From Perkinsela sp. CCAP 1560/9 (lineage: Eukaryota > Protista > Euglenozoa: Kinetoplastea), in NCBI GenBank assembly GCA_965644495.1, contig CBFFSA010000014.1:186001-250000 (forward strand): a DNA stretch of 64,000 nt, read 5' to 3'. Below are positions 12,527-45,494 of the stretch, in pieces (within the stretch, counting starts at the first letter, position 1; every line of letters begins with the position of its first letter). The translations under genes and the position numbers were made by a program. The notes beneath the pieces were generated by a model, which saw only the letters and a program-made list of their open reading frames with translations, was not told the DNA's origin and searched no databases.

Positions 12527-14250
12527 TTACATCCGAATTCGTACGGATATTTTGTCTTCGCTCAATGTAAAGTGTTCGGGATGAGATTGTAGGAAGTGAC
12601 AGACCCCACCTTTCATTCTGCGAAGGACCGTGCGTGCATCACTCGGTAGTTGCACACCGATCTCAGAGACATTCATTGGAAGGAGGGGTTGACCTAAGAA
12701 CAGTTTTCGAAGCTCTTGAAGCAGGACATCGTCATTGAAATACGGATTTTCTACCGTAGCGCTCGGGCTCGCATTGTCGTCCTCGGTGGCTCGACGTACA
12801 AGATACTCTTTTTCAAAAGTACTTTTTTCTTGCACATAACGCATGTTTTCCGTGACAACGACACGGTCGGGAAATTTCTGGAACCACTTTGCAAAAGTAC
12901 ACATACTGCATTAAGACCCTTCGTAACGTGGTGATACGCGGCTCTCTGTTCATCACTAATATTTTCCAATACGGCTTCCAGTAGACCTTTTAAAGGGACG
13001 CACATACCCTGTTCTGGTAGTTTCAGAAAAACCTGCTCCATTAAATTTTGATTCCAACAATCGAATTCCTCGACGCTCATTGACACTTCCTTATCTCGTG
13101 CTTCCTCCAAATCTCTAAACTCTGTAAAATCAGGTGTAGCACATGCTTGGTTAGCATATTCGCGGGCGATTTTATTTTCATTACTGTTAAACCTCTGTTG
13201 AAACTCCGTCTGGATAAGCGTCGTATAGGGTGCGAAGCTGCAAGGGGGACATATCTCGGGATGTTTTTCACGTATGCGACTTCGTATTCTGGGATGTTTC
13301 GAGTCTTCCATATTCATTTCAAACGCCTTAGGATATAGGAATGCAATGGTAGGTAAACGAAACGGTGCGGTATGTAGCCACGTCTTGCATGACGGAAATA
13401 AAAAAGTTTTACACGCGAAGGAAACAGGAACAAAGTGTGCTGGTAACCCACAAGCCAATAAAACAATAAATTCTCGAGACAACCCCAAGTGCTCGCCATC
13501 CGCAGGAGGAAGCTCTGTCGAGGAACAGCTTGGAATTCTTTTAATGTATATGACTTGGTGAACCGGCATGAAGCCTATACGACAATCCTTGCAAAGAAAA
13601 ACATATAATTTTCTTACAGGGGTTTTCTCCCATAATGCTTTCATCTCCGGAGCTAACTTCTTGACCAATGTCTCAAGCTGCACAAAATAGTTCGGAGCAA
13701 GCAGAAGCAAAGCAGATGCCAGACGTTTAGTTAACATCACACATTCCGTATCCCCAATATTAAACACATCCCTGGCGATAGCTTCAAAGTCTTTTCGCAG
13801 TAAGAAGGCCACCTTGGTGGGATTCCACTGCACCGTGTAATGCTCTGCAAGTGTATCATCACTTTGTATGGTTGTCAAGACTTCGCATGGAGGTCGGTTG
13901 TAGTAGAGATATGAAAAGCAATCAAGCCGCGCCCATCCCTGTTTTGGGACATATAGCTCAAGAAAACGCTTCAAATCACCTGGTGAGGGTAGAAAATTTC
14001 CGTTAGCGTCTACTCGACGTCGCACCTTTGTGCCGTCATGGCTCAGTTGAAACCCAGCGGGATATTCTTTCAAAAAATTTTGTATTGACCCAAACGAGAC
14101 GTCCAGCACGCCTTGCACTCTCTTAGGCAACTTCATCTGTATGGTAGAGACGGTAGATACTGAGTGGTAGGGAACGTTTTTAGCAATGCTATAGGCAATC
14201 TCATGAGGCAAGGTAATAGGAGAATGAAACCGTCGCTGTGAACGCATCAT
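12527..14250 (-). pseudogene. Winged-helix (LOTUS/OST-HTH-like) family paralogue 1, frameshifted near 12900
   Basis: ORFs 12751-14259 and 12527-12904 together match the length and motifs of the 14641-16368 paralogue (EKEYLVRRATEDD vs EKDYLVRRATDDD). Confidence 0.75.
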
Positions 14251-14640
14251 TCTGTTCAACAGGACTCACATGTGAAAAGGGGTGCAACACTTATTCGAAT
14301 ATTTTAGAGAACTACAAGATTCCCTTTTCGAAGTAGAGTCCATAAACAACGCAAGTACATGTATGCCCGATGTTTAGCTATTTCTGTGAGGAAACGTCAC
14401 GGTCCCAATTCGAGCACATGTCAAGGAAGAAGGAACGAAGAAAACTTTTTTAAGATTTCATAGGGTGGACCACTACACTAGAAGTACATACACTAGAAGG
14501 GGAGGACTGGGAGGGTAAACACACTACATTCCATAAGGTATGTGTTATGATCAGCATAGCTACAGTATGACATAGCTATGAACGTCATAGTTATGTTTTT
14601 CTAGAATCGTATTGTTGAAAAAGCTTTCCTGTTACCCAAA

Positions 14641-16368
14641 CTACTGTACTTGATGGGATTCTTTTTTTAGATAAACTAGATGTGATTCACTATCATAAAT
14701 AAAGTGATCTGATTGCGACTGAATAAATTTCAAAACACCCCCGGCAGATCTCCGAAGTGCTGTCTGCGTTGCACGAGGCAAAGTGTTATGTATGTTGTAT
14801 ATGGAAATCGGTATTTTAGGACTAACAAGGAATAATTTACGAATCTCATTGAGTGAAGCATCTTCAGTGTAGTAAATATTCTGCTTCTGAGACGTGTCAT
14901 GTACCGCATCATCATCAGTGGCACGCCGCACAAGATAATCTTTCTCGTACCTTCGGTACTTGTCACAATATTGTATGCGTTCCTCCATAAAGAATTTACG
15001 AGGATTCTTTCGCAAAAGGCAAAAGAAGGATTCTCCATGTATAACTCCGGCTCGAAAGCGAAAATTCGGAGATCTTTCGACAGCTGAATTGAGGAACATG
15101 TGATACAAATCCCACGATGCAATGCTCTCCCCACTGTCCGGAAGTAACTCCCATATTATGTTGATCGCTTCTGCGCGATCAGCTGTATCTGCTTTTTGTG
15201 TGTCAGGCTTCCATTTCGTTATATCTTTAAATACTTTCAAACACGTGTCGGAGCAAACGGTTTCAGCAAAAGATTTTGCCTGACAGTTTTCCGGAAGGTT
15301 CAGTCGCCGAAAAAATTCCTCTTCGACACCTTCCCCATAGGGTGATTCATCACTGGGAGGACAAATTTCAGGGTGAGTTGTTCTCAAAAGACTTCGAACA
15401 AGATATGACGTTCCGAACAAACCAGTGCAGCATTTTTTGTCGAAGGCGCGTGGGAACAAAGAAACAATAGTAGAGAGACGAAATTCGCAGGATTTCAGCC
15501 ACGCTTTTACAGACGGAAATATATATTTATCTGCAACCTGTACAGCCACGAAGTTGTCTGGAAGGCTGCAGGCCAAAGACAACACCATTTTTAAAGGAAC
15601 GAAATATTCACTGTATTGCTCTGTGCAGCATGGAATATCCCTAACCTCGGGACGACGACGTACAAAGACTTCGCCGGTAGGTAGAAAAGTGGATATTTGA
15701 AATTTATCAAGGAAAGGATAGAAAAACCTGGGAGGATCTGCTTTAATTGTTCGCTGTACTTCAGCAGGGAGCCTCTTCTTCACCGCATAAAGGCTAACGA
15801 AATAATCTGGAATAAGTGACTCCATGATGTTGGAAGCAAATTTAGACATTAAAACCAAATTACTCGAGCCTATGGGATAAACTCCCTGGGCACGTTCCGT
15901 AAAACTACGTCGTGCTAAGAATGATGTTTTTAACACATCCCATTCGACCACGTATGCCTCGGATAAGGCATCGCTGCTTTGTATTCCAGATACCACGTAG
16001 CTGGGTTTTTGGTCATGGTATATTGAACAAAACTTGTCAAGACGGATCCATCCGTCTTCTGGAACGTACTGCTCCAAAAATTTCTCCAGGTCACCTGGTT
16101 GAGGAGTGCGACTGCCGTCTCCATCTAAACAAAGCCGAATATGACACTCATCTCGACTAAGTTGAAAAGCGGCGGGGTGTTTTTTCACGTAAGAAGCTAA
16201 ACTATTACCATATTCTTCGCTAAGTAGAGTTTTGATTTCGTTCTTCATTTTTGCATGTAGTCCCTGCACTGAGTCCTTTTTTGACCGGCGTAGAAAATAC
16301 ACTAAGACACATGCAATTTCACAAGACATTAAACGCTCCGGGGCTAATCTCACTAAAGACCTCCACAT
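14641..16368 (-). CDS. Winged-helix family paralogue 2, predicted mitochondrial
   Basis: Starts MWRSLVRL; family motifs YVPEDGWIRLD, LACSLP, IFPSVKAW, HPEICPP, GGVLKFI. Confidence 0.85.
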   Translation of the reverse strand: MWRSLVRLAPERLMSCEIACVLVYFLRRSKKDSVQGLHAKMKNEIKTLLSEEYGNSLASYVKKHPAAFQLSRDECHIRLCLDGDGSRTPQPGDLEKFLEQYVPEDGWIRLDKFCSIYHDQKPSYVVSGIQSSDALSEAYVVEWDVLKTSFLARRSFTERAQGVYPIGSSNLVLMSKFASNIMESLIPDYFVSLYAVKKRLPAEVQRTIKADPPRFFYPFLDKFQISTFLPTGEVFVRRRPEVRDIPCCTEQYSEYFVPLKMVLSLACSLPDNFVAVQVADKYIFPSVKAWLKSCEFRLSTIVSLFPRAFDKKCCTGLFGTSYLVRSLLRTTHPEICPPSDESPYGEGVEEEFFRRLNLPENCQAKSFAETVCSDTCLKVFKDITKWKPDTQKADTADRAEAINIIWELLPDSGESIASWDLYHMFLNSAVERSPNFRFRAGVIHGESFFCLLRKNPRKFFMEERIQYCDKYRRYEKDYLVRRATDDDAVHDTSQKQNIYYTEDASLNEIRKLFLVSPKIPISIYNIHNTLPRATQTALRRSAGGVLKFIQSQSDHFIYDSESHLVYLKKESHQVQ

Positions 16369-16822
16369 TGAAAGGTAGAGTAAGTATGAATTGTCGCATG
16401 CGGCTCTACTTTGTAAAATTAGATACACTGTCATACTGCTCTCACTTCAATAAATCTTTTCAACTCATGAAAAAGTATCACATTTTTTTGCTATCACTTT
16501 ATTACTGTATATCAGATGCTATTGCTCCTTATAAACCTGATTGTACTACGCTTCCCACGATGAAGAAGCCAGTTGCAAGTGGTGGCCCTTCCAATGCAAA
16601 GTAGCGTTCTCAAGTTTTACATACAGACATCGAAAATCCCCCAGGTGTTGGAGGAACCCTTACACTCATTAGAAAGAATTTAGAATCACTGCGTAAATTT
16701 GTTAAACAAAGATGCACAATAGAGGTTGTTCAACGCAATATTGAAACTATTTCTTCGAAAACAAAGTCCCTTGCACCTTCTTCTATTTTGTGTGTGTACT
16801 CTCAACAAAGAGTAATCAAGCG

Positions 16823-18550
16823 TTACGATTCCTTTAGATAAATTAGTGCCGAATCGCTTCCATGTGGTTCCATTCGAAACACTTTCGGATGGTTCGCGAT
16901 GAACTTACGCCATCCGCCCATAAAGCGAAGGGCTCTCCGCGCCTGACTCGGTAACATAAATAGAATGCCTGTAGGAGATTTTCCATTGCGGTCATTTTTG
17001 AGAAATGTTTCTCGAATGGCCTGAATGAGGGCCTCTGACGTGAGGTATGGGTTCTGTTGCCCTTGGCGATGCGATGTCTCTGCAGGACTCTGCTGCGCCG
17101 CCTTACTAACTATCCAGTCGTATGCACGACCCATTTGCACCTCCTCTACATGGAGTCGCTCTGGAAAACGTTTAACAAACTTCAGTAGTGAATTTCTATG
17201 TTTCAGTGTGATAGTGTTCTTGATCTTACGATATCGATCAGCGGGAACGAAGTCACGAAGACGAATCATTAAATCATACAATCGTATAGGATCATGGGAC
17301 TCATTAAGAACAAGATCTAGAGCATCCAATATTTCACTTGGTTCTAGTACGGGAGCATCTTTGCTAATCACAACGTCGTCTTTCCTTACCAAACGAAATA
17401 TTTTCCTTTGAAATAACTTGTCAGAAGGTTCGGAAACAAGTTCATTAAGCTCTTTAATTGTCTCCGGGCTCTGTTTCATCAGTTTTGCCTCAAACTCAGC
17501 TTCCGCTTCTAAAGTAAATGCCTGTTCGGTAGATGGCGCTAAATGTGGATACTTCATTCGCAGCGCTGAGCTGACTTTACCATACGGTTCTATATTAATC
17601 GCCTTGGGATACATTTGGGCGAGATCGGAAAGAGAAAATGCTGCACATTTTGCACCCCATTTCATTACGGAAGGAAATACAGCGCCCTGGGCGTAGAGAA
17701 CCGAGACCGGCGTGGTAGGGAGTGAGAACGCGAGCTTTAGCATGAGCTTTGGGTGTAAGTCGTAGGCCTCATAGATGGGCCACTTGTTTTCTTCTTCTTC
17801 AACCGAGCGCGTGGCGCCCCACTTCCGTACGTACGGGGGATCATTACGAAGGCAAGCCATTTCTAGCACTTCATCACAAAACCCTAGAGCCTGAGATACA
17901 TTTACGGAATTGTGCCACCTGTGCTCATCTAAATTGGCATCCATTTTCCCTTGTCGAAGTAGCATAGGAAACGGAACCCAAAAATTGGGCGCAAAGCTCT
18001 TGATGATTTTAAGAAGTGTCGGTGCCTTAATGCAAGTTGAGTTATCACCCAGCGAAACTCTCCCCCCAGTCGATTCCCAAAACTTCTTGCGTATAATGTA
18101 TTCCTTCTCGCTATTGGAGCATGCTTTTTGAAGATCAAAAATTTCAGCACAAGATGGGTCGTTTGATAGGTGTGAAATCACGTAAGACTTTCGCAATTTA
18201 GGGTGTAGTAGTCTACAAAAATCTTCAATTAGTAGGAATCCGAATTTCGGCACATATCTTTTCAATGCTTCACTTAACTGGGAGGACGAAGGAATGTGTT
18301 CGCGCACCTTCAAACGAACTATGGTTTCATCCCGATTCAAAAGAAACAATTCGGGGTAACGTTTAACAAATTTTATCATATCATACTGCTCAGCCGCAGC
18401 AACTTTAACAGGAACAGCAGCTTTACTTGTGATATTCGCTATAAATCGCTGGTTTTTCTCTGCGACTTTTAGCGTTTTTTGGAGCCACACTAATAAGTCA
18501 GTCGGATGGACAAGAGTGTCCATCCGAAAGCGCGACGAAATACGGAACAT
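16823..18550 (-). CDS. Winged-helix family paralogue 3, predicted mitochondrial
   Basis: Starts MFRISSRFR; motifs YVPKFGF, LAFSLP, VFPSVMKW, GGWRKFIANHPKVF. Confidence 0.85.
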   Translation of the reverse strand: MFRISSRFRMDTLVHPTDLLVWLQKTLKVAEKNQRFIANITSKAAVPVKVAAAEQYDMIKFVKRYPELFLLNRDETIVRLKVREHIPSSSQLSEALKRYVPKFGFLLIEDFCRLLHPKLRKSYVISHLSNDPSCAEIFDLQKACSNSEKEYIIRKKFWESTGGRVSLGDNSTCIKAPTLLKIIKSFAPNFWVPFPMLLRQGKMDANLDEHRWHNSVNVSQALGFCDEVLEMACLRNDPPYVRKWGATRSVEEEENKWPIYEAYDLHPKLMLKLAFSLPTTPVSVLYAQGAVFPSVMKWGAKCAAFSLSDLAQMYPKAINIEPYGKVSSALRMKYPHLAPSTEQAFTLEAEAEFEAKLMKQSPETIKELNELVSEPSDKLFQRKIFRLVRKDDVVISKDAPVLEPSEILDALDLVLNESHDPIRLYDLMIRLRDFVPADRYRKIKNTITLKHRNSLLKFVKRFPERLHVEEVQMGRAYDWIVSKAAQQSPAETSHRQGQQNPYLTSEALIQAIRETFLKNDRNGKSPTGILFMLPSQARRALRFMGGWRKFIANHPKVFRMEPHGSDSALIYLKES

Positions 18551-19439
18551 GTTAACTAGACATCGCGCAAATACCTATAATAAACTTCCGAGTAGTAAGG
18601 TGGAAAAACCTTTTCACATGACTATTAACAATTTAGCATGATAACTATTAATAATTTTACCGCTATGGTTGCAGGTACTCGCAAAAGGGGTTTGTTTCGA
18701 AAAGAGGACAAATAAGTAGGGGGGCGGAGCTATGACAGTTAAGTGGGGGGAGTCACAGTTCGTGCATACTTAAAAAATACTGTTTACGAATCTTTATAGG
18801 TCAGCTTTAGTACCATCAGTAAAATAGTGTGTACTTTGTTGCTTGTCAAAATAGACGTATCATATGAAAATGTCCCTAAGGTATGCGGGCGCGAACGTGA
18901 CCACCGCAACAGCACCGGGAACGCAAGCGGCCACGCGCCTATTGTAGAAGAAGAAAATGTTGCATCAATTTTTGATTTATCTTCTGCGACATAGCAACAT
19001 GAAGCTGACGATGCCCTGTGGAGTCCGCGACGTACAATTACGCGTACAACCAAAAACCTGAAGAAATGGCATTGCCGGTAAAAAGGGAATATTTTTGTAC
19101 CAACTCTTCCGATTGACAGAAAACAATTTTTGTAATATTCGAATAAATTCCAATAATTTATAAGAATCTTTCATTACAAAGGAACTGTTATGCAAAGAAA
19201 GTTAGCACCACCTTTAAAATCATTTTTCGTGCAACAACATGAGCCTTGACTGCGAAGGGTATGAAACATTTCAGTGAATAAAATCCTACCATTGGCGTAC
19301 AGGATGACCATTCCTTCCTAGGATGTGTAAAAACTCTTCAGCGCCGTGCGAAGGTGAAAGGAAAATAAATATCAAAATATTTAAGACTGTGCAAGAAAAT
19401 TTAAAGAAATCTTCTTCGGTTTGCCTAAAAAAGAACCTA

Positions 19440-20019
19440 TAGTCCGCGTCATATTGATCCCCCCCTCAGGAAATTTTAGTTTTTTTATCCGATTTTGCTC
19501 ATCTTTGCAGTATTCGAGAGATCTCGTTCCGGTAGGAAAGTTTTTTGCCGCAATAAAACGTAAGGAGGGGGGTGCCTCCAGGAGAGAATCCCAAAGTTAG
19601 GAAAAAACAGAAAAAGTTAGGAAAGAATTTCAATGATCACATGACTCTGATACATTCAATTCAATCATAATCATGTGTGATCGCCGCTTAGCTACAAAGC
19701 GTTTTTTTGAGGAATTCGTATTTTTCATTTAACTAAAGGTATTTTTAAGGGATTCAGACGAGGATACGTGCGGTTTCGGCCTCTTCGGGGTGCTGGAAGA
19801 AGAAAAAGTCATGAAAAAATAAGAAAGTTTTACATCTATTCAAGATTTTAGTAAAAAAACGTGTAATTTTCCACTATTTCGAAGCGTCTGGCTAAAAGGT
19901 AAAAACAGTGGCGAAGTACTTTTCTATGGGAACGAGATCTCTCGAATGCTGCATAGATGAGCAAAATCGGATAAAAAAGCTAAAATTTCCTGAGGGGGGG
20001 ATCAATATGACGCAGACTG
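19440..20019. mobile_element. MITE with ~90-bp TIRs, TA-flanked
   Basis: agtccgcgtcatattgatccccccctcaggaaatttt... is mirrored at 19929-20019. Subterminal sequence is shared with 56855-57623. Confidence 0.85.
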
Positions 20020-20493
20020 TATAAAGGGGGGAGGGGTCGAGGCTATTATAAACAGGGGGGGTACAGTACTTGTATGTACTTACGGGACATACGGGTATGT
20101 TCCGGTGACGGGAACGTTTTTAGTAATTACAGCGCAGGCATGTCTCCACATCCACAATGGTAGATGCTGCGTCTTCTGGTGCTTGACACACGAGACAACG
20201 CCTAGGAGCCAACACCGAAAAAACGCTTTCTTTTCACATTCCGTAGAGTAAAGCTGCGGAAGAGAATCTTGCCCAGACATAGCTCTACAGGAGGAAATCA
20301 TGATACGGAGTTTGATTGGAAAATTATTTTCTATTCTTTTGTATTCAGAAATCTCAAAAGAGTACTAATTTCAAAAATATAGATTAAAGAAAGATTTTTT
20401 TTGAAAATAATTTACCCAGTGCAACCTGTGTTACCCAGTGTTACCCATAGAAACTTCTAAAAAGGCGGACTTGCAGAAGGTCCATTGATAATA

Positions 20494-21226
20494 CAGGGGT
20501 GTAAATTTGGATGTGGGGGGGTCTAAAATTTGTAAAACTTGGCCAATTTTGAAAAATAATAGCGCATTCGAGAGCTCTCGAATTGGGTTCATGAACGTGC
20601 AAGTACAGCATCTGCATTAATTAGATTTTCAAGTGCACATACAAAGATTTTTTTTTTTTGGGAGACAAAATCTTGCATTTTTCACAGTTTTTCTGATTTC
20701 TCCCCTGATTCATGCCCCAAAGACAGGGTCGTGGGCGATAACCCGAACACAAAGACTACGAAAGGGCTTATTCTTCGCCTGCGCACGTAGAAGCAGGCTG
20801 TTGCATGGTTCTTGTTGCCGATTACGAAACAACATAATCTTTTTCTCGCTAAAAATGTATGTTCCATAGTGGGCAACTTCAAAAATGATTGAGCCCCTCG
20901 GAATCGTGCAGATTCGATCGAAGCAGCGTTTCAAGGCCCCTGAAAATGCCAAGAAGAGCTTTCGAAAGCGATGCTGTATTGTGATTGAGATTAACCGACG
21001 ATAATAGCCATTATTAATTTCTTTTTCGATATGTGCTATTGATTTAGAAAGTTGCAAATAGCGTTTGGGGGCTCTTTGTCTAGGGGGCAATACCCCCTTG
21101 TGCCTAGTTCGGCCTTGCTACATTCATGAGCCCTGTTCGAGAGCTCTCGAATGCGCCATTATTTTCCAAAATTGGCCAAGTTTTACAAATTTTAGACCCC
21201 CCCCCACATCCAAATTTACACCCCTG
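20494..21226. mobile_element. Tc1/mariner-type MITE (CAGGGGTG termini, TA target duplication)
   Basis: ~90-bp TIRs beginning caggggtgtaaatttggatgtggggggg, related to the TIRs of the element at 32612-34617. Confidence 0.9.
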
Positions 21227-21873
21227 TATATCTTCGGGAAACTCATGCCGTGCGCTTCGCGTTGAAAACTACCACCGCGTTTAACGAAGAGCCTAAAAAA
21301 GAAATTACCTTTGCAGATTCGTGGAGATCTCGAGGAACATTACTTGGGGAAAATATTTGCTTTTCGTTCGAAAAGCTATATTCTGGAAAAGCTGTATTCT
21401 GAAGAAAATTAACTGCGAAAGTCAAATTTCTGAGAAAAAAGATGCTCACATTTTCTTGAAGAAAACTCTTAAGAACACTCGAAGATCATAAAAAAAAGAT
21501 ATTTTACAAAGTAGTACAACATATCAGATGATGTCGACATGGAATGTGTTTGCCGTCGTATCGAGTGCACAATTCTAATCTTTTTTTGAACGATGCATGC
21601 AATATAGCACCCTTCTGCCGACATTCGAAATCCGACTTTTGTGCATGGGAAATCACTCGTAGGCATGAATGAAGGCCTACTGAACGTATTGGGTAGAGAA
21701 TACGACTCCAACCACACCATTCTTTCGACACGAAAAGGCCCCTTGGGGTCCAAAAAATACTTTTCATCGTTTTCAGTCAAAAATGGGTCATTTTTGGAGG
21801 CATACCACGGCTCGAAGGGGTATCTTGCGAAAACTGCGGAGAAAGCTAGTATAGGTCCTAAACTATCAAAATA

Positions 21874-24790: not shown

Positions 24791-25514
24791 CCGTATACCC
24801 CCAGTAAGAGAATGGGATTTGGGTCGAAATGGCCAAATCTCTCTTACTGGGGGGGTATGCCTTTTTGGCCAGTTTCCTCTTTTCTCCCAACTTTTTTGAC
24901 TATTTTTTTGTATTTTTTCTTCGGAAAACGTGTTAAAACGCTTCTTTGGGTTACCCCCGAGGCCCCCAACATGCAAACACCCATCCCCTACCTATTTGGC
25001 TCCCAAGCCAAATCTCTCTTACTGGGGGTCAGCCCAAAAAGGGCCAAATCTCTCTTACTGGGGGGGTATGCCTTTTTGGCCAGTTTCCTCTTTTCTCCCA
25101 ACTTTTTTGACTATTTTTTTGTATTTTTTCTTCGGAAAACGTGTTAAAACGCTTCTTTGGGTTACCCCCGAGGCCCCCAACATGCAAACACCCATCCCCT
25201 ACCTATTTGGCTCCCAAGCCAAATCTCTCTTACTGGGGGTCAGCCCAAAAAGGGCCAAATCTCTCTTACTGGGGGGGTATGCCTTTTTGGCCAGTTTCCT
25301 CTTTTCTCCCAACTTTTTTGACTATTTTTTTGTATTTTTTCTTCGGAAAACGTGTTAAAACGCTTCTTTGGGTTACCCCCGAGGCCCCCAACATGCAAAC
25401 ACCCATCCCCTACCTATTTGGCTCCCAAGCCAAATCTCTCTTACTGGGGGTCAGCCCAAAAAGGGCCAAATCTCTCTTACTGGGAGGGGGGTACCTTACT
25501 GGGGGGGTATACGG
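24791..25514. mobile_element. CCGTA-terminated (Tc2/pogo-like) MITE, TA-flanked
   Basis: TA|ccgtatacccccagtaag ... cttactgggggggtatacgg|TA. A related left end occurs at 41993. Confidence 0.8.
24831..25485. repeat. 211-bp tandem repeat, about 3 copies
   Basis: Identical ORF starts at 24930, 25141 and 25352; units appear identical. Confidence 0.95.
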
Positions 25515-26786: not shown

Positions 26787-28730
26787 TCACTCCATCCGTC
26801 GCCTCCCCCCTCGCTGGGATCCCTCTCGTTTCTGTGCGACCGCCTTGTTTTTTTTCTCTTCCTCCTCCCTCTCCTCTGGGGTCACCAGCCACACGACATT
26901 AGCAAACTTATCGAAGTGAAACGTCCCGGGGTGTTTTAAAATTACCTGCGTCAGCCCGCCGTATCTTCGAGCCGCTTTCTTTGCGGCCTCCGGGAGCTGT
27001 GCCTGCAGCGCGTTCATCGACTTGCGACGCTCCGTGTCGGCCGCCCAACAATCCAGCATGGCTTTCAATAGATTATCCATTAACAAATATGGATTCCCCT
27101 TCTCGTGGTCACATACCTCGTCGCGACGTCGTACGCAGTTCTCATAGATCACATTGCCATGTGCTGTCTCCTTTTTTTGCTGGAATATATGAAACTTGTC
27201 ATGGTGTTTACGAAGGAATGTCATTGGACGCCCATCATGGCGTAGATCTAAACCGTTGCGCAGCATCATGTGCTGCCTGGTATTGAGATGAGAGCTCACC
27301 AGGGGAAGCAGATCTGGCATAAGCACCGAAGAAAACTCCGGGATACGATGGTAAATAATGTCCGCAATCTCGGCGTCGGTCATGGAGGGGGCGTCAAGCG
27401 GCAGAGAAATCCAGCCGAGTTTGGAGGAGTACACCCGCTTGAACCCCTCTCGTTTGCGGCGCTCGAAATCGACCGGAGTGAACATCGAGGTGCAGGGCTC
27501 CTCGGCGAGATTCAGAAGCTCCCGACGTGCCTCGGCGTGAGTTTCGGAAGTCAATGCGACGTCAAATGTTGCCTCCGCCTCCAGGGTGTGCTCGGTCCCC
27601 TCCACCGGCGACATCTCCGGGTAATCCTCCCTCACCAACGACCGTATCTGCCGGGTCTCACTGCGTGCGATAAGTTTCGGAAACATACACGCCATTGCGG
27701 AAAGCGTAAAAGCACTCTGGGCCCCCCATTTTGCAATCGAGGGAAATACCCCCGCCTGAGCCTGTTCGAGGGAAACAAACTTTGTGGGAAGACAAAACGC
27801 CAGCTTCACCATCACCTCCGGCGGCATCGCATAGCTCCTGTAGCTCCCCGCTAACCTCTCATCCTTATCCACATCCCACGCCACTTTCACATTCGGCAAC
27901 CTCCGGACAAATATCTCCTTCTGTTTTCCATAATACGCCTGGTCCAGCTCCGGGGTCACCAACAGCACCGTCTCCGGCCCCACCCCCCTCTCCGTCACCG
28001 TCCGTCGCACATAGGACACCACCACCGCCCACGGCACCCAGTACCCCGGGGTGATTTGCAAAACCCGCTTCCCCACATCCACCGCGGTGCCATACATCAC
28101 CGTCCCGCTCCCCGGCGGGAACCGGCTCTTGGTCTCCGCCACCCAGGCGCGCCTCCCCACGTACGGCGCCCCCTCGCTGTGGTCCTTTCGCACCTCGTAG
28201 CGCGTGGCCATCTCCCCCCCCCGGGTCAGCACCTGGAGCAGCCGCGGCACCTCCTGGGAGAGCATAATGTGCAGCAGCTCGAGCCGGATGTAACCCGCGT
28301 GGGGCACCAGGCGGTGGATCCCGTTCGCGAGGTCGGCGTCCTGCTGCACCACGGACGGGGGGACGCGACGGAGCTGGAGCGCGGTGCCCTCCCGGTTGAG
28401 CTGGAAGTAGGTGGGGAAGGCGTGGGCGAAGGTGCGGGGGGTGCCGAAGTACTTCTCCAGTTTCACCCCGTCCCGGTAGGACAGCGCGGGGAGCAGCGCG
28501 GAGAGGGGGAGACGGCCGGGGGGGAAGTTCCCGATGCGGTGCGCGCAGAGTAGGCAGCGCGCGACGGTGAACACGAGGTCGAGCCCGGCGGAGCGACGGA
28601 CCTCGGGGTACTGCGAGGCGACGTAGGAGGTGGTGAGGAGGTGGTCGAGGGAGGGGGGAGGGGGCGGAGGGGGGGCGCAGCGAAGGGTGGGGGTGCGGTA
28701 GTGGAGGAGGGGGAAAAGGTTGCGGTACAT
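26787..28730 (-). CDS. Winged-helix family paralogue 4, predicted mitochondrial
   Basis: Starts MYRNLFPLL; motifs LVPHAGYIRLE, LAFCLP, VFPSIAKW, YGGLTQVILKHPGTF. Confidence 0.85.
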   Translation of the reverse strand: MYRNLFPLLHYRTPTLRCAPPPPPPPSLDHLLTTSYVASQYPEVRRSAGLDLVFTVARCLLCAHRIGNFPPGRLPLSALLPALSYRDGVKLEKYFGTPRTFAHAFPTYFQLNREGTALQLRRVPPSVVQQDADLANGIHRLVPHAGYIRLELLHIMLSQEVPRLLQVLTRGGEMATRYEVRKDHSEGAPYVGRRAWVAETKSRFPPGSGTVMYGTAVDVGKRVLQITPGYWVPWAVVVSYVRRTVTERGVGPETVLLVTPELDQAYYGKQKEIFVRRLPNVKVAWDVDKDERLAGSYRSYAMPPEVMVKLAFCLPTKFVSLEQAQAGVFPSIAKWGAQSAFTLSAMACMFPKLIARSETRQIRSLVREDYPEMSPVEGTEHTLEAEATFDVALTSETHAEARRELLNLAEEPCTSMFTPVDFERRKREGFKRVYSSKLGWISLPLDAPSMTDAEIADIIYHRIPEFSSVLMPDLLPLVSSHLNTRQHMMLRNGLDLRHDGRPMTFLRKHHDKFHIFQQKKETAHGNVIYENCVRRRDEVCDHEKGNPYLLMDNLLKAMLDCWAADTERRKSMNALQAQLPEAAKKAARRYGGLTQVILKHPGTFHFDKFANVVWLVTPEEREEEEKKNKAVAQKREGSQRGGRRRME

Positions 28731-28913
28731 GGGGGGAAGGAAGACGTGAGATTGGAAGAGGTTAGGATTGGGGGAAATAAAAAAAGAGTTGAGTAGAAAC
28801 AAGGATGTGGTTGGGAAGGTGTAGCGAGACGAATGGGAAATACCGGTGAGGTCAGTATGTTGGATTTTCTTTACAAGGGATGTTAGAGGTGTGTCGTGGC
28901 AGTGACCTGGTGC

Positions 28914-30698
28914 TTATCTGCTACCTGTGGAAGTGTTATTTTGTTGAATTGTGCTACATAATAGAACCACTACTTGTCCGCACACTCGGATATTCTTTGG
29001 ATATGCCATGAAAAACTTTTGAATTCCCTTGGTTCGCAAAGATTTTTTTGCGCCATCCGGTAGACGCTCAAACAGATTACTGATGGCCATTGATTTTCGT
29101 CCAGTATCAAAGCAAGAAATTATAGCTTCAAGGAGAATTTGCGGGTCCAAAAAAATATTTCCCCGTTCCTCGGGAGAAGCTGGTTGTCGAGACAGAATAT
29201 ATTGGAGTCGTTTATCCTCCTTGGGTTGCTGCTCCATGCTAAAACCGCAGTTAGGATATTTGCGTATAAGCTTGACAATGCTTCCCTGGTGTCGACTTAG
29301 CAAAGCATGTTTTACTTTATCCTGAACGACACTACTGATATTACGTATATCTGCCGTTACCTGGACCAGTGGCACGCACTCCATCTCAGGGACTCTTTCG
29401 CGTATCATTTCCAGTATCTCATGATCGGTAAACGGATTTTGCACTCTGTCTAAGAGCTTTTTCTTCCATCCGACTCGAACTTTTACCTTTTCCGTACATT
29501 TGTATGGCTGGAAAAACTTACTTGAGGGCTCGGAAGCCATGTGCAGCAAATGTTCCAGCTCGGGGCTTGCAGCAATCTTGGTGCAAAACTCAGATTCCGC
29601 CTCAGCGGTATATTCTAGACCTGTTTCTGGGGATATATCGGGGTATTGCTTTCGTACTATGGAGCGTACGTCTTTTTCCCAATTGACTTCTATAATTTCT
29701 GGATACATTTTAACAAGGGCGGAAAAGGAAAACGCAAGATCGTTCTCGATCCACCTTTTGACAGAAGGAAACACATTCCATTGTGCCTCCCTCTGAGAGC
29801 GAAATTCACAAGGCAACGAAAAAGCTAACTTCAAAACTTTCTTGGGACCGAGTCGGAACGATGTATGCGACACCTCACACGGAGGAAGTTCAAACTCACA
29901 ATTTCGATTGTCGCGCCGAACAAAAATATCACTACTATTCGCGTAGCTGGAGAGCTGAATGGCCTGATTTAAAATTGCTGAAACTCGACTATGTCCAGCT
30001 ACATCTATGGCATTACGATGTTCCGGTGGTACACGCTCTAGACACTCTTGTAAGGGTACCCAATAATGCGGTACGGCGCGAATCAACATGTCCGCCGCTT
30101 CTGCTGCCAAAAATAAACTATGGTTATCACCAACTAAGAAAACACTAAGCAGGCAAGCTTCTGTTTCACGTTTTAATATGAATCGTTTCTTATTTGAATC
30201 AATAGCCGTTGTATATATTTTTTGTAGATCCTCGTTGTTTAAGAACAATTGGTAAACCGTCGCAGAAGATATATTGCCAAACAGATGACACAGTAACTCA
30301 AGATGAACGAAACCTATTGGAGGCATTATAGACTCCAGCACCTTTTGCAATGCCTTCTCGTTGATGTCTTTTTCAGGAATCGGAGGGACTCGCTCAATGA
30401 GGTCTCGATCGGGAAAAATGCGGAAAACACTTGGGTAGTTAGAAAAAAGGTTATTAATAGATCCCCAATACTCCACTATCTTAGATCTCTTTTGCTCCTT
30501 CCATCTTGCTCTCACATTCGACAGTGAACCCCTCCAAGGCCGTGCGTTGTAGCCCGTTCGATTATTTACGCGGTCACAAAGCGTCAGACACGTCCAACTA
30601 AGCGTCTCAAACGCAAGTATGTTGCGCGCCAAAATTTTCATGCTGGCGCGACATGATAAATCTTTCTGTTGGACTCTGATGCGCGAGAATAGAAACAT
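28914..30698 (-). CDS. Winged-helix family paralogue 5, predicted mitochondrial
   Basis: Starts MFLFSRIR; motifs WGSINNLFSNYPSVF, LAFSLP, VFPSVKRW, YPDISP. Confidence 0.85.
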   Translation of the reverse strand: MFLFSRIRVQQKDLSCRASMKILARNILAFETLSWTCLTLCDRVNNRTGYNARPWRGSLSNVRARWKEQKRSKIVEYWGSINNLFSNYPSVFRIFPDRDLIERVPPIPEKDINEKALQKVLESIMPPIGFVHLELLCHLFGNISSATVYQLFLNNEDLQKIYTTAIDSNKKRFILKRETEACLLSVFLVGDNHSLFLAAEAADMLIRAVPHYWVPLQECLERVPPEHRNAIDVAGHSRVSAILNQAIQLSSYANSSDIFVRRDNRNCEFELPPCEVSHTSFRLGPKKVLKLAFSLPCEFRSQREAQWNVFPSVKRWIENDLAFSFSALVKMYPEIIEVNWEKDVRSIVRKQYPDISPETGLEYTAEAESEFCTKIAASPELEHLLHMASEPSSKFFQPYKCTEKVKVRVGWKKKLLDRVQNPFTDHEILEMIRERVPEMECVPLVQVTADIRNISSVVQDKVKHALLSRHQGSIVKLIRKYPNCGFSMEQQPKEDKRLQYILSRQPASPEERGNIFLDPQILLEAIISCFDTGRKSMAISNLFERLPDGAKKSLRTKGIQKFFMAYPKNIRVCGQVVVLLCSTIQQNNTSTGSR

Positions 30699-32389: not shown

Positions 32390-32611
32390 TTGAGGGTCTC
32401 TGGGCCAGGCACCCCATAGGTGGTGAAGGCCAGGGGGAAAAATCCATCCCTCTGGCGGCCGCCATCTCGTCATGGGCGCGGCGCTTGTTGCCTTCCGCCA
32501 TCCTCAGTGTATAAGAGGGATGGGCGGCCTCCTTATCTACGTAGGACGGGGCCAGTGGGTTAACCACGGTGGCGTCCACACGGGCGAGCTTCCGACCCAG
32601 TTGGAAGCATA
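32390..32611 (-). pseudogene. C-terminal part of the retrotransposon restriction-like endonuclease
   Basis: CFQLGRKLARVDATVVNPLAPSY...GNK, then PLAFTTYG after a frameshift. Confidence 0.85.
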
Positions 32612-36864: not shown

Positions 36865-37067
36865 AGGTTCGGACGGGATTCCGGCCGTGTGTGCGGGCTC
36901 CGGCCGTAATGGCCGCCGCCGCGATCTCTAGTATCGTCCCGCTGACGAGCGGGGTGGGCTCCCCCATAAGGACCGGCGCGAGGCTGCCATCCTCGGAGTG
37001 TGGCTCACCGGCGTGCTGGTTGCCCTCCCCCTGACGAGGGAAGTTGGGTTCAGAACCTTTCGGGAGG

Positions 37068-37667: not shown

Positions 37668-37678
37668 AGCGTGGGGCC

Positions 37679-38956: not shown

Positions 38957-38989
38957 GGGGGTAAAGTAACGAAGAAAGAGGAAGTAAAT

Positions 38990-39025
38990 CAACAGGGTAC
39001 AGAAACTGTATCTTTATCGTTAAAT
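38990..39025 (-). ncRNA. SL exon-like sequence (36 nt) fused to the retroelement 5' end
   Basis: ATTTAACGATAAAGATACAGTTTCTGTACCCTGTTG matches the kinetoplastid pattern AACTAACGCTA...CAGTTTCTGTAC...TTG. Confidence 0.85.
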
Positions 39026-40011: not shown

Positions 40012-40500
40012 CTGTAAAACATCTCTTGATCAGGGGCGTTATACCCTCAGACACGACACCGCGCTAACTGAACTCGCCAAACACATCCAAGAATCCCCGC
40101 ATACAAAATATCAGCATTTTGACCTACTAGGTCACCGAAATCCACCACATTGGCTACACAACAATCCGAATCATCAACGTCCAGACGGATTCGTTGCACT
40201 GACTGACGGTACAGAATACATCGTTGAGCTCACTGTCCCCTGGTAAGAGAACTCAAGTACAACGCTCTATTACACGAACGACGAATAGTGCACCCGAACA
40301 CGTACCTCCTCGTATTCGAAATTGGAGCACGAGGTGGTCTGATATCCTCAGCGGATATTAATCGGTTGTTTGGAGGGGGCAAGGATTTGGGGGCTAAATG
40401 TCGGGCGACGCTCTCCCGAGCTGTTATCCGTTCCAGCTTCATATTATGGCACAAGCGTGATTCCCCGCAATGGAGCGATGCAGGGACACTGTCCGCATAA
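40012..40500 (+). mobile_element. Restriction-like endonuclease fragment of a different non-LTR clade (HERO/R4-like)
   Basis: GRYTLRHD...QRPD...IVELTVPW*...FEIGARG...SFILWHKR, with an internal stop. Confidence 0.75.
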
Positions 40501-40639
40501 GGGATGCAACTAACAGCGTCATATGCGCAAGTTAGTTACATCCTAAAAATCCTCTATCTTAAAAGGTATGATATCATCATATCGTACCTTAGATTGTACC
40601 TTGTTGCCTTTTTCTTTATACCTTGTTGATCTACCCCAT

Positions 40640-40960
40640 GTACCCCTTCACCCCCCTTCGCCGCGCCTTTCGCCGTCTCCCCGCCGTGCTTCCCACATCC
40701 CTCCATGCCGTTCTCCCTGCCTTGCTCCCCGGCATGCTCGCTCCCGTGCTCCCCGCGCCTTTCGCCGTCTCCCCGCCGTGCTCCTCGCCGCCCTCCTCGC
40801 CGTGCTCCCCGCCGTGCTTCCCTCGCCTTTCACCATCTCTCCGCCGCGCTCCCCGCCGCCCTCCTCGCCGTACTCCCCACCGTGCTCCCCGCTGCGCTCC
40901 CTGCCGCCCTCCCCGCTGTCCAACCGCCCAACTCCCCGCCTCTCTCCGCCGCGCTCATGA
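40640..40960. repeat. Degenerate C-rich ~12-bp minisatellite (ccgccgtgctcc)
   Basis: Visible periodicity; only low-complexity ORFs in all frames. Confidence 0.8.
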
Positions 40961-42475
40961 TGTGGAGCTACCCGGCGTCAACACAACAAGACGTCAAGAA
41001 ACTAGGGTAGCATCAATACAAAAAATTTAAGGCAGGGTCGTGGATTAACTTGTTAAGCCACGCTGAGGAGTAGCGAATCCCTCCTACCCTGGAGCTGTAA
41101 TTATTGGCTTCCTTTTATAGGAGGATAAGTCGCGTGTGTGCCTTCTATGGTTGAGATTACTCCTGTGTTAGCACAGATGCTTCGAGCTTCAGCATCCGCA
41201 CAGCGGACCTAGGCTGGAACTAGGGGGGCATATCTCCTCGGAGACAAACGGCTCTGTGATACATCCATCCATACCTTAGATTACCCAATCTCGTTTAGCA
41301 GTGCCACATTCATCCTTTGTTATATTTTCTCCTGAATGCCGAAAGTACAGGTGAACTGGTCGTGCGAACTGTGTGATGATTTTTCATGCGTTAGCAATAT
41401 GTTATTTACTTCGATAGCCGAGTCCACTGAACAAGAGCTCCGGTTATGGCTTAAAAACCACAAACCAGTGGTACAGCAGGCATGGTGTGCCAAGGAAAAG
41501 TATCATGAGGAGCCTGTGGCCTGTGACCGCACTGAAACTTGTTGGTTGTGCCCGATGGAGGGCAACGGTTCCTGTCGAGGCCATGACTACTCGACTTCAT
41601 GACTACGGCCGAAAATTTGGCTGATGGATGGAGTAGAAATGCTTTTGGAACTTGGCGATTGGGCGTGGAACGAGCGAATGGGTGGACGCGGGCTACCCAC
41701 TCGCCCATAAGATTAAGCCCATAAGCCACGTAGGCAAGCAAGTACAGTAAACGTCATTATTCTGAGAGTTGCTAAAAATGAGAATTGGGCTATCAACGTA
41801 CAACTGACTAAAATGAGAATGTACCTTGGAAAATGAGAATGGAGCTTCGGTCATGTGTCACCGTTCAATTCAATTTTACACTGAAGAATGAGAATTGAAA
41901 AAAAACTCTTTCGTTCTCTCACTGCTTAACTCACTGCTTCATCTTCACTCACTGGAGAGTATGTGAGAGATCGGTGGAAATGACTGCGGATACCGTATAC
42001 CCCCCCAGTAATGGACCCCAGGAAACTGTCACACCCGCTGGGCTTGGGCGTCTCTTGGATAGCAGCAACTTCGTGCATCACTAATCATTGTTCTTCCGTG
42101 TGATAGCTGTGTGGTAGAATTTCTGGGAGTTAGACCTCCACCTAGTACCGTAATCTCAGTAAGAGAGAATTGGTCCTTTTTGGGCTGACCCCTGTAAGCG
42201 AGATTTGGTTCGAGGGGCTGAGCCATCGGGGTGGCTGGATGGGGGAGGGTGGCTGGGCGGGGTGACGGTAGTTGGACGGGCGGTGATGTCTTTTTTAGAC
42301 GCTTAAAATGTATCTATGAACCTGCAAATGTCATAAAAACGTTTAAGAGGAAATTTGAGTCATTTTTGAAAAAAATCTATTTTTTGTCAAATATTTGTCC
42401 CTACCGTCCAACGGACGCTTGGCCGAAAAGGTAGGGGAGGGGGTGACTTTTCGCTGTGGGGCGATTATTAAGATA

Positions 42476-43422
42476 CTGTCACCCCCCCTTTATACTTCCG
42501 CCGGTTTCGGTACTTTTGGAAGTATAAAGGGGGGGGTCTGATTTTTTGAAAAATCCGCGAAACAAATACTTTTGAAATCCTATTATTTATTTTTGAAATC
42601 CTATTATTCTAGCTAAAAATCAATCATCTAATCTCCAAACATGCAGGGCATAATGTTTGCTTCCGTGTTCCTCTTGCACACAATCAACATACGCTGTATA
42701 TTACGCTGCAGTGAATACGTGTCGGGACGATCTACCATTAGAAGCTTCATGGGACAGTCTTTGAAACGAGGTACATTCGCCTTTGCTGCAGCAGGCGCAT
42801 GTCCGCGCTGGCTGTCATCCCGTCCAGTTCGCTAAGGAGGAGTTCGTCAATTTTTTCGCATCTCGACATGTTTGTCCTTGTGCAAACCCCATCGCGCTTG
42901 CGACTACGATAGATTTACTTTTTTCTGGAAAAATCCGACACCATTTTTCCGGAGGGAGCGGATGGTTCGAGATCAGACGCCGTACTTCTCGCTGATTTGT
43001 GGAGCACTGCTACTCGAATGACACACATTCAACTTCTCCTACATTTTTGGGTTCTTTCCTCCCTGGGGTGAACCGACGGACACTGGTAATGTCGCAGGCT
43101 CCGCGCTTGAAACCATTATTTCGTTGGGAGGCCGAACGCGATGAAGAGGGGGATAAAGCTTAACCCACTGTGAGTATTGACATGGGAAAAAATGCGGCAA
43201 ATAATTTAAATGTATATCTAGCAATATCTCTACACACATCTCTAACGTTTAATAAAAAAAATGTAGAAAATTGTTAAAAAAAAATTTTTTTAACCCATTT
43301 TTAACCCCATTTTTTTGGGACCGGAAGTATAAAGGGGGGGTGCTGATTTTTCATCTGGATGAAAACGGAAGTATAAAGGGGGGGGGGGTTGACCCCCCTG
43401 AAGGATAAAGGGGGGGTGACAG
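42476..43422. mobile_element. MITE with ctgtcaccccccctttat TIRs, TA-flanked
   Basis: Perfect 18-bp TIRs; internal gaagtataaagggggg motifs as in 21874-22231. Confidence 0.85.
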
Positions 43423-43517
43423 TAATAAATAATGAAAATCGTTTCTAATACTGTACCCCTAATTCTCCACAAATTAATTACCAGTGCGCAAGGTCGCGTT
43501 AAGATTTAGTGAATCAG

Positions 43518-45494
43518 TCAGGATGCTCCAAGATGGAGAGAGGAACGTTCACGACGCGCAAGCTTCTTTCCTGCTTCGGTTAATGTGAGATAGACGTTCG
43601 TTGTATATGACTTGGCTTCGCGTTCCGTATTTATAATGTCACCGAAATTTGCCGCAACGCGCAAGGCACCCCCATACGAATATAACGCCTTCACTGCCAA
43701 CCGAGGCAGGAGAGCGTACAATAATGTGGGACATATTCGTTTCTCTTTTGCCTGAAGCACACACTCAGCAATGGCGGCCTTAAGGTTGTGGGGATCCATA
43801 TAGGGATTTGGTTCAGAGGTTTGAGTGTGAGGCGCCCGTATAGGAGCCGTCGATGCTTCACATTCCGATGCGCTACGCAGTGCGACATGAAGGTCGTATC
43901 GGATCCCACGGTCGTGCGGCATATGGACTGTCTCTTCCTCTAGTCGAAATATGTCCGATCGCGCCTCAAGAAATTTATCCAAACTCGCGTGGCGCGTCGA
44001 TTTATGTCCCGCTCTTTTTCTCTGGTGCGGTATGCCGCACCGATATCCGGCTTTGAAACGGGCCCAATCCTCGCTGCTAAGTGCTTGTTGAATCTTAGAA
44101 ATCAATTGCGAAACTAAAATCAAATGAGAGATGGATAAATGGCCTTTTAGAATGGTGATCACTTCGTCCGAACTCATGGGTACCAATTCCTTCGAATCGA
44201 GAGTAGCTTGCTCTCTTTTCAGGATTTCAAATGAAGGTTTACTAATATAGCTGAACAGTTTATTTGTAAACTCTGTGTGTACTTCTGAATATAGAAGATA
44301 CACGAGTCTATTCTCCTCACTTTGGTCAAACTTATCCCTGACTACACCAAACCGCTTCACCACATCACTTGAAAATTTGGAAACAATGTTACAGGAACAG
44401 CAGTCAGAGGAGTCGAGCGCGGGTTCCTTGCCATGGTACGCGAAAAGCTTCGAATACCCAGACACCCACATACCCGAGGAGTGCCTTGAGCGAACTAGGA
44501 ACTCACGCACCGTCGGGAAGTTCTTCCGATGCGCCATTGACATCGTGCGTGGCCACACGACACTGAAAGCAAGCAGTGCCACCACCAGCAACGGGAGGCC
44601 GTACTCGAGCGCATACGTCACATCGGGCTGAGAAATCACCCGTTCCCAGGGCTGTTGCGGACACGCAGAGTCTCTCCCGAGTGCGTAGAGCACTTCCGCG
44701 GTAATCTCGCTGGCATCTGCCTCCGGAAGCTGTCGTATCCCACGCACCCACACCTTGGACTTTGGGTGGTTATCAAACTGCGTCACCATTGCCTCTCTTT
44801 TGGGGTCCAGCATCTCCGCAAATCGCCGGGCACCAAGCCTACCAATACCTACTTGCAAGTCTACCGGTACATGCCCGAGAACCTGATGCAGCGGGACATA
44901 GTAACTTGGAAGATACTTCGCGAACAGCGATTTATATAAACATGCCAATAGCATTTCTAAGATTTTACCATGGTGGTGCGGGGAGGCGTAGGCTGTCACC
45001 CACACCCGGCGTCCAACTAGAAAATGTTCGACGCGGTGAGGTTGGGGTTGGCCATCCGGGTTGCGGGCGAAATGGTAAGTCGCAAACATCTGGGATAGTA
45101 ATTCCGAGGACTCCAACACGGAGAGTAGTTTCCGGAGGGAGTAGTCCCCAAAATGCATAGAGATACAGGAGAGAGGGAACAGCCCTTGGGCGGGGACCAG
45201 TTTGTTAAATGCGGTCCCAAGCTCGGTTTCAGACACCGCGTCGGGTGCCTTCACCTCATATCCTTCTAAGAGGTGCTGCTGGGTAGGGTTTCGCCGGACG
45301 TAGCACTCGTGTTCTTTGAGAAATAAGTCTACGTCTTTCCAGACGAGTTGAATAACCTGGACGGGGCGATCACCAAGGATTCTTTCCAGCCCTAGGGTCA
45401 GGGAATTGCAGAGCTTGAAGGGTCCATGGGTATCACACCAATTTCGAATACGTTGTATAAGGTGTAGTCCAATCGCTCTTTTCGCACGCCCCAT
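43518..45494 (-). CDS. Winged-helix family paralogue 6 (most divergent)
   Basis: Motifs LVPAQG, LPSYYVPL, LAFSV, NFPTVREF, NPYMDP, YGGALRV in the family order. Confidence 0.75.
   Translation of the reverse strand: MGRAKRAIGLHLIQRIRNWCDTHGPFKLCNSLTLGLERILGDRPVQVIQLVWKDVDLFLKEHECYVRRNPTQQHLLEGYEVKAPDAVSETELGTAFNKLVPAQGLFPLSCISMHFGDYSLRKLLSVLESSELLSQMFATYHFARNPDGQPQPHRVEHFLVGRRVWVTAYASPHHHGKILEMLLACLYKSLFAKYLPSYYVPLHQVLGHVPVDLQVGIGRLGARRFAEMLDPKREAMVTQFDNHPKSKVWVRGIRQLPEADASEITAEVLYALGRDSACPQQPWERVISQPDVTYALEYGLPLLVVALLAFSVVWPRTMSMAHRKNFPTVREFLVRSRHSSGMWVSGYSKLFAYHGKEPALDSSDCCSCNIVSKFSSDVVKRFGVVRDKFDQSEENRLVYLLYSEVHTEFTNKLFSYISKPSFEILKREQATLDSKELVPMSSDEVITILKGHLSISHLILVSQLISKIQQALSSEDWARFKAGYRCGIPHQRKRAGHKSTRHASLDKFLEARSDIFRLEEETVHMPHDRGIRYDLHVALRSASECEASTAPIRAPHTQTSEPNPYMDPHNLKAAIAECVLQAKEKRICPTLLYALLPRLAVKALYSYGGALRVAANFGDIINTEREAKSYTTNVYLTLTEAGKKLARRERSSLHLGAS

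Follow-up and report, generated by a model that had tools for sequence, protein, structure and literature searches.

Winged-helix modules of the LOTUS (OST-HTH) type bind RNA or DEAD-box helicases. The winged helices of Egalitarian hold RNA stem–loops, as the titles of its PDB entries state, and the plant mitochondrial proteins MNU1 and MNU2, which carry LOTUS domains, act in transcript maturation (PMC9181182). Here we describe six paralogous genes (c1 to c6) that lie between positions 12527 and 45494 of a 64,000-nucleotide stretch of contig CBFFSA010000014.1 from Perkinsela sp. CCAP 1560/9 (hereafter the window). Their products are predicted to carry a leader-like N-terminus followed by six winged-helix modules (W1 to W6), of which three resemble LOTUS domains. 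A literature search returned no published description of the family.

Like TDRD7 and MARF1, the proteins carry several modules per chain, but they lack the Tudor, NYN or other partner domains of the LOTUS/OST-HTH proteins (TDRD5, TDRD7, Oskar, Tejas and MARF1), and three further winged-helix modules that are not LOTUS-like form their conserved core. Whereas those LOTUS proteins belong to the animal germline, the present family is protistan and predicted to be mitochondrial. MNU1 and MNU2, which combine an NYN nuclease with two LOTUS domains, set a precedent for LOTUS modules acting on transcripts inside mitochondria. The module type is the only homology with the present family that was recognised; MNU proteins have NYN nuclease, OHA and WW-like domains, and no catalytic domain is recognisable here. 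Egalitarian (WH_Egal; PDB 9rvy, bound to mRNA localisation stem–loops) is the closest protein by Pfam, by PDB sequence and by language-model cluster, with every score below the curated cut-offs; the present family lacks its exonuclease domain and its BicD or dynein context. The PPR, OPR and HPR/RAP families are analogous in function only, as lineage-specific, fast-diverging, presequence-bearing modular families that often stand in tandem. They are alpha-solenoids rather than winged helices, and no code-like repeat regularity is known in the present family.

Paralogues and predicted fold

The minus strand carries all long open reading frames (ORFs) of the 12527–45494 region, as in a kinetoplastid polycistron. 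The six paralogues align over their whole length at a pairwise identity of 14–33%, a level at which they are saturated. A six-copy profile recovered every copy from the 21-Mb assembly to which the window belongs (E 1e-166 to 1e-224), and the consensus reads, in order, GSxxxFxKxYPxxF, VPxxG, PxYWVP, LKLAFSLP, FPSVxxW, YPEIxP, NPY and GGxxKFxxxxPxxF. The initial annotation had reported six paralogues with ordered motifs; all six ORFs and every motif that it listed were recovered, and the profile scores and the motif consensus together place that observation far beyond chance. The proteins are basic (isoelectric point (pI) 8–9.4), as are modules W1, W3 and W6 in particular (pI about 9.5–9.7; median for W1 9.7). 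No invariant acidic or histidine residue that would suggest catalysis was found in an alignment of 23 full-length members.

On this alignment we built an AlphaFold2 model of c3, with a mean predicted local distance difference test score (pLDDT) of 83.1 and a predicted template modelling score (pTM) of 0.61. The model folds into six helix–helix–helix–hairpin units, that is, winged helices, with a two-helix linker (residues 345–375) between W4 and W5 (Table 1). When the modules were compared exhaustively with the structures of 48,161 PDB representatives, W5 of the predicted model superposed on the full LOTUS domain of several proteins (Z 8.4–9.4, root-mean-square deviation (RMSD) 2.2–3.3 Å), best on TDRD7 (3rco_A, Z 9.4, RMSD 2.2 Å over 76 of 76 residues), followed by TDRD5 (3s93_B, Z 9.1) and Tejas (8wxs_B, Z 8.4), with Egalitarian at Z 8.1 and MARF1 (5yad_B) at Z 7.0. 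W1, W2 and W6 matched ordinary winged helices at Z 6.3–7.1. A separate model of residues 160–400 (pLDDT 85, pTM 0.83; pLDDT 94–97 over W4 and the linker) placed W3 on the winged helices of AlkZ/YcaQ and cullin and on the MARF1 LOTUS domain (Z 5.7–6.5). The Egalitarian tandem winged helix aligns on W5–W6 (Z 8.1) and on W3–W4 (Z 5.2), and the high RMSD indicates that the modules are oriented differently from those in Egalitarian. W4 produced no independent fold match of its own and is therefore called winged-helix-like only.

The first and last units had been noted as alike from the sequence, and profile–profile comparison with hhalign bears this out: W1 and W6 match at 97% probability (E 7e-11), W5 and W6 at 93%, and W1 and W5 at 87%. 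At the level of these profiles, W1, W5 and W6 are homologous to one another, and W2 to W4 have diverged past detection. The modelled structure thus has the six-module winged-helix fold and the LOTUS likeness of W5, in agreement with the tandem winged-helix build and LOTUS/OST-HTH-like units that the initial annotation had proposed; the AlphaFold count of units in c3 is six.

At the level of the whole chain, likeness fades. A Foldseek search of the whole model against the PDB and a shape search of the ESM Atlas returned just low-scoring multi-winged-helix matches, which support the fold class and name no family. The top whole-chain matches, SelB (C-terminal WH1–4, which bind SECIS RNA) and TFIIIC tauB (which binds DNA), have at least four winged helices per chain, but the template modelling (TM) scores are 0.15–0.17, there is no sequence similarity, and biology and compartment differ. 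Against the tandem winged-helix scaffolds TFIIIC tau138, UFL1 and RPC62, TM-scores for the whole array were 0.09–0.17 with E above 3e-3, and single modules alone correspond.

An alternative is that the proteins are mitochondrial but do not read nucleic acid themselves, serving instead as protein–protein scaffolds or as accessory subunits, perhaps of the mitoribosome or of an intermediate in its assembly. Mitoribosomal winged helices from Toxoplasma gondii (9g6k_L0, Z 7.0 on W6) and plants (9evs_1r, Z 6.6 on W5) match the model, as do Chlamydomonas 7pkt_K and the Trypanosoma brucei assembly factor 6yxy_Bi on W3 (Z 4.4–4.8), and arrays from cullin WHB, UFL1 and ESCRT-II are present among the matches. 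The most conserved surface, W3–W4, forms a rigid core (pLDDT above 94, pTM 0.83) in which W4 has no obvious basic character. Furthermore, the mitochondrial rRNAs of Perkinsela have so far escaped detection and are suspected of being either fragmented or extremely divergent (PMC4669381), a state that elsewhere goes with extra ribosomal proteins. The mitoribosomal Z scores, however, lie within the range that any winged-helix domain gives, and a profile search connected the family by sequence with none of the solved mitoribosomal chains. At least ten fast-diverging paralogues per genome would be unusual for stoichiometric ribosomal subunits, and the overall pI of 8–9.4 and the three basic modules fit a scaffold poorly. 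We regard this alternative as unlikely.

Sequence searches against characterised families agree with the distance seen in the structural searches. Pfam OST-HTH (PF12872) matched none of the six window copies, and a single one of the 23 members scored E 3.4e-4, under the curated level. Ten of the 23 members matched Pfam WH_Egal (PF23713) at E up to 0.1 (best 5.4e-5), all below the gathering score of 27 bits (c3 19.6 bits, c6 12.3 bits). For the six copies and a giant 3,191-residue relative described below, Pfam gave nothing above its cut-offs. Full-length and W6 profiles found nothing below E 0.1 among PDB sequences; the best hit of the W6 profile was Egalitarian (E 0.16), and the nearest language-model cluster, WHD_Egal (score 0.84), is a lead only. 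Profiles run against PDB sequences revealed no homology to the solved trypanosomatid RESC, RECC, mitoribosome or assembly factors. When c3 and the 23-sequence profile were used in a word-indexed homology search, nothing but the query's own protein came back; because the search saturates at 8,000 candidates, this outcome is uninformative. In sum, the predicted fold is a winged helix–turn–helix, and no characterised family lays claim to these proteins in the Pfam, PDB and representative searches.

Winged helices are also classic DNA readers, and the ligand of these modules could be kinetoplast DNA (kDNA) instead of RNA; the proteins would then bind or organise it as factors of packaging, replication or transcription. 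The fold matches include TFIIIC tauB, MarR, IclR, forkhead and DNA-bound AlkZ/YcaQ, the proteins are basic, and a published account puts the amount of mitochondrial DNA in Perkinsela above that of nuclear DNA (PMC4669381). Yet the only clearly outstanding matches, LOTUS and Egalitarian, are RNA or helicase binders, HMG-box or histone-like features are absent, and profile searches of the PDB linked the family by sequence to none of the known kDNA-associated proteins. A role on kDNA thus seems quite improbable.

Table 1 Positions of the array genes, of the predicted modules of c3 and of other features; window coordinates unless a contig is given.
Feature	Position	Strand	Description
c1	12527..14259	-	Broken in this assembly; profile matches both pieces (600.9 + 107.3 bits)
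c2	14641..16434	-	ORF of 597 aa; probable true start Met23 at 16368
c3	16823..18550	-	575 aa; copy chosen for modelling
c4	26787..28802	-	First ATG 28730, MYRNLFPLLHYR; P0007 is its orthologue in a Perkinsela-like genome
c5	28914..30698	-	594 aa
c6	43518..45506	-	First ATG 45494 (MGRAKRA); most diverged copy
c3 W1	residues 14-82; 18305..18511	-	Predicted basic winged helix, LOTUS-like by profile; winged-helix matches at Z about 7
c3 W2	residues 87-156; 18083..18292	-	Predicted winged helix; MarR, SelB and tRNA 2'-phosphotransferase winged helices, Z 6.3-6.8
c3 W3	residues 168-245; 17816..18049	-	Predicted winged helix with PxYWVP; AlkZ/YcaQ winged helix Z 6.3-6.5, MARF1 LOTUS Z 5.8
c3 W4	residues 256-330; 17561..17785	-	Winged-helix-like in the model; LKLAFSLP and FPSVxxW; best-conserved block of the family; pLDDT 94-97
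c3 W5	residues 402-485; 17096..17347	-	Predicted LOTUS-type winged helix; best structural match TDRD7 3rco_A
c3 W6	residues 503-573; 16832..17044	-	Predicted basic winged helix, GGxxKFxxxxPxxF; related to W1 and W5
5-nt stretch	12896..12900	-	Present in window, X1 and X4; absent in X2; inside module 5
634-aa W1/W6-module protein	L015 3849..5753 on C15	-	
703-aa W1/W6-module protein	L016 5236..7347 on C3	-	
About 1,500-aa W1/W6-module protein	C1:4015872-4015994		

N-terminal leaders and predicted localisation

Because the ORF caller also accepts TTG and GTG, each ORF was read again beginning at its first ATG. The N-termini then become MMRSQRRF (c1), MFRISSRFR (c3), MYRNLFPLLHYR (c4), MFLFSRIR (c5) and MGRAKRA (c6). 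For c2 the working start is probably Met23 (MWRSLVRL), because codon 8 (16413) is a stop in two of the sequencing runs compared below (CAA>TAA in X2 and X4). With ATG starts, all six copies open with a short Arg/Lys-rich, acid-poor N-terminus. The initial annotation had counted five presequence-like starts; the number was one short, and the mitochondrial-type composition itself extends across the 23 members. In nearly all of them a short basic stretch precedes module 1, with much Ser, Thr, Leu and Phe and almost no acidic residues (for example MFRISSRFR, MWRSLVRL, MMRSQRRF and MLRGTRRNFFRAR), at about 20% identity elsewhere in the proteins. The N-termini of clearly cytosolic neighbours, unlike these leaders, open with acidic residues. 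In the AlphaFold2 model the folded part of c3 begins at about residue 15, after the leader. No C-terminus inspected had a peroxisomal PTS1 ending.

Relatives of these proteins occur in the published 'Perkinsela_mitoproteome' of Tanifuji et al. (2017) (PMC5601477, Table S1.7.1), for which SignalP, TargetP, Predotar and PredSL were among the tools used. KNH07776 and the weaker relative KNH05188 each have a mitochondrial targeting (mtTP) score of 4 there, and two further members, found by their AFSLP motif, score 4 and 2. Three Perkinsela members are thus already in a published predicted mitoproteome, though they were not recognised there as a family. The description and recBLAST cells of this supplementary table recur over unrelated rows. 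The T. brucei identifiers beside the family rows (MRB6070 and MRPL13) were considered as names and misfit the sequences; we did not use these labels because unrelated neighbouring rows repeat the same identifier and E-value, and the cells look filled down.

From the leaders and the published mtTP scores, import into the mitochondrion is likely. The competing view is that the basic N-termini are incidental and that the proteins work in the cytosol or nucleus, where they would bind RNA and regulate the polycistronically transcribed nuclear genome. It draws on the dependence of kinetoplastids on post-transcriptional control and their expanded RNA-binding families, and on the cytoplasmic location of animal LOTUS and Egalitarian proteins. 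It does not readily account for leader-like N-termini in 23 members whose identity elsewhere is about 20%, for a first folded module that starts only past the leader, or for members at the top score of a published list built with four targeting programs. We consider a non-mitochondrial location very unlikely.

Distribution and history of the array

We searched 1.84 billion representatives exhaustively with HMMER, using a seven-row profile from the window; of the 54 hits, 30 were traced to their source. Among these 30, full-length relatives came from environmental contigs, Apiculatamorpha spiralis, Perkinsela sp. CCAP 1560/4 and a further two ENA assemblies that are Perkinsela-like; single modules are shared by Papus ankaliazontas and by additional environmental proteins. 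The sole named hits outside Prokinetoplastina were Branchiostoma proteins, with one module at E 1e-4 to 1e-5, and no trypanosomatid, bodonid or diplonemid protein was present. As far as these sequences reach, the family is Prokinetoplastina-specific and lineage-restricted. Two Perkinsela sp. CCAP 1560/4 members are named in GenBank as 'FNR-like protein FLP' (KNH07776) and 'multifunctional fatty acid oxidation complex subunit alpha' (KNH05382), and neither name is supported by any domain, nor is the public name of KNH05188. The FNR-like, fatty-acid oxidation subunit and tetratricopeptide repeat annotations were each considered as the identity of the family and discarded, as Pfam detects no such domains.

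The family was first described as having six members, which proved too few. A seventh full-length member of 741 residues lies on contig C1 at about 1197064–1199289 (L009 781..3006 (+)); it has low-complexity acidic and Pro/Ala-rich inserts, and its partner in the tree is an environmental protein, P0021. The same contig carries a 3,191-residue ORF (P0018, about 46000–56100) with no Pfam domain, in which a W(1)-W2-W3-W4 cassette is repeated at least three times and which has orthologues of 3,325 and 3,579 residues in Perkinsela-like genomes. Several LOTUS-like modules of the W1/W6 type, in other arrangements, also occur in each of at least three further proteins, whose lengths are 634, 703 and about 1,500 residues (Table 1); the 634- and 703-residue proteins begin with MFRR- or MLLLR-type sequences.

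In a maximum-likelihood tree with Shimodaira–Hasegawa-like approximate likelihood-ratio (SH-aLRT) support, c4 groups with P0007 (support 97) and c6 with P0020, the Perkinsela protein KNH05382 (support 100, a value to be read with caution because two long branches meet). Copies c1 and c2 are younger duplicates (support 99), yet they are only 30% identical, and Perkinsela has additional expansions of its own. One Perkinsela-like genome has two adjacent members directly upstream of eIF1A, a 589-residue gene and the alanyl-tRNA synthetase gene (AlaRS), the same downstream neighbourhood as that of c1 in the window, and a second has three family members side by side. Because this eIF1A/AlaRS neighbourhood is kept between relatives whose AlaRS proteins are only 47% identical, the array is ancient and has stayed in place. 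The orthologue pairs c4/P0007 and c6/P0020 and the conserved synteny bear out the earlier idea of an old, diversified array. The eIF1A ORF of the window (11190–12410, minus strand), as listed, has a 130-residue N-terminal extension rich in Pro, Ser and Phe; the long ORF is probably a read-through of the 5′ untranslated region, because the conserved protein begins at MPKNTGMGGKNRKK.

Members lie 100–300 bp apart in the relatives, whereas in the window 8 kb separate c3 from c4 and 13 kb separate c5 from c6. A reverse-transcriptase element (RVT_1, E 2e-17) occupies the c5–c6 gap, and inverted-repeat elements and tandem repeats the c3–c4 gap. With members directly adjacent in the relatives, this supports the proposal that transposon islands spread the array apart.

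Within the c3–c4 gap, two short elements resembling miniature inverted-repeat transposable elements (19438–20021 and 20491–21229) are bounded by long inverted repeats, of 112 nucleotides at 90% identity in one case, and of 87 nucleotides at 92% and 31 nucleotides at 100% in the other. A tandem repeat at 24827–25488 has a 211-bp period and at least three copies at 99–100% identity; short plus-strand ORFs without a Pfam match form a ladder that overlaps it. Elsewhere in the window, a 459-residue ORF (52716–54095, minus strand) has a PCIF1_WW domain (E 2e-8, above the cut-off). This domain belongs to the family of cap-adjacent adenosine methyltransferases, which is notable given the hypermodified spliced-leader cap.

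Copy c1 is interrupted. Its N-terminal piece is in frame from the ATG at 14250 to about 12897, and its C-terminal piece (12530–12769 and upstream) is in a different frame, with the stop at 12527–12529. We compared public contigs from sequencing runs X1 (the likely source sample), X2 and X4 over 12401–18400; these are contigs, whose depth and strand are uninformative on expression. In X2 (depth 67), precisely five nucleotides are missing at 12896, and its translation joins the two pieces in one frame through the module-5 motif. X1 and X4 (X4 depth 53) share the five extra nucleotides. The frameshift is therefore a genuine strain polymorphism rather than an error of assembly. Comparing the window with X2, we counted six amino-acid changes and one silent change in c1, and one amino-acid change and two silent changes in c3; these are too few for a selection test and fit relaxed constraint on c1. 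One 191-nucleotide contig of X4 has a four-nucleotide insertion (GATC) at 17838, within module W3 of c3, which would shift the frame if real.

Proposed function and significance

Taken together, the six genes are best explained as an old tandem expansion of a Prokinetoplastina-specific family whose proteins are predicted to consist of an import leader, a W1–W4 winged-helix cassette, a helical linker, and W5 and W6, both of the LOTUS type. The proteins would be imported into the kinetoplast-bearing mitochondrion and act there in kinetoplast gene expression, as modular adaptors or binders of nucleic acid, with RNA a likelier ligand than kDNA. The diverged paralogues would serve different targets or partners, by analogy with PPR, OPR or HPR expansions in other lineages. 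We infer import, nucleic-acid binding and the diversity of targets from the features described above, and give a tandem-expanded, imported, modular nucleic-acid-binding or adaptor family about even odds. Among the explanations considered we favour imported modular RNA-binding proteins or adaptors because of the basic modules, the likeness to LOTUS and Egalitarian, and the MNU precedent.

Several observations weigh against this assignment. Winged-helix arrays also serve as pure protein scaffolds, as the cullin WHB, UFL1 and ESCRT-II matches illustrate, and W3–W4, the best-conserved block, is the least LOTUS-like, with no confident fold match for W4 itself. Leader composition is a soft criterion, and the PMC5601477 mitoproteome list is itself predicted, with description columns that misfit the family rows. 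Copy c1 is broken in two of the three samples and six of its seven strain differences alter the protein, so that c1 at least may be dispensable. The evidence for expression is one 170-nucleotide contig from a run that is guessed to be RNA.

A more far-reaching version, which we hold as a doubtful extension of the imported-binder assignment, would have Prokinetoplastina possess their own class of organellar RNA-recognition proteins built from LOTUS-type winged helices, in place of PPR, OPR or HPR proteins. This class would comprise the six-module family, the cassette-repeat protein of about 3,200 residues and the other leader-bearing module proteins, and its paralogues might stabilise or mature mitochondrial transcripts, guide RNAs or the probably fragmented rRNAs of Perkinsela.

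Among kinetoplastids, Perkinsela and its relatives branch earliest, and in their DNA-rich mitochondria every mRNA is edited. For the lineage-specific factors that are missing from this Prokinetoplastina mitochondrial system, the family offers a concrete set of candidates. The wrong GenBank names of Perkinsela members, including 'Tetratricopeptide repeat-containing protein', could be corrected. If the proposed assignment is true, the family would be the second case, after plant MNU, of LOTUS modules inside mitochondria.

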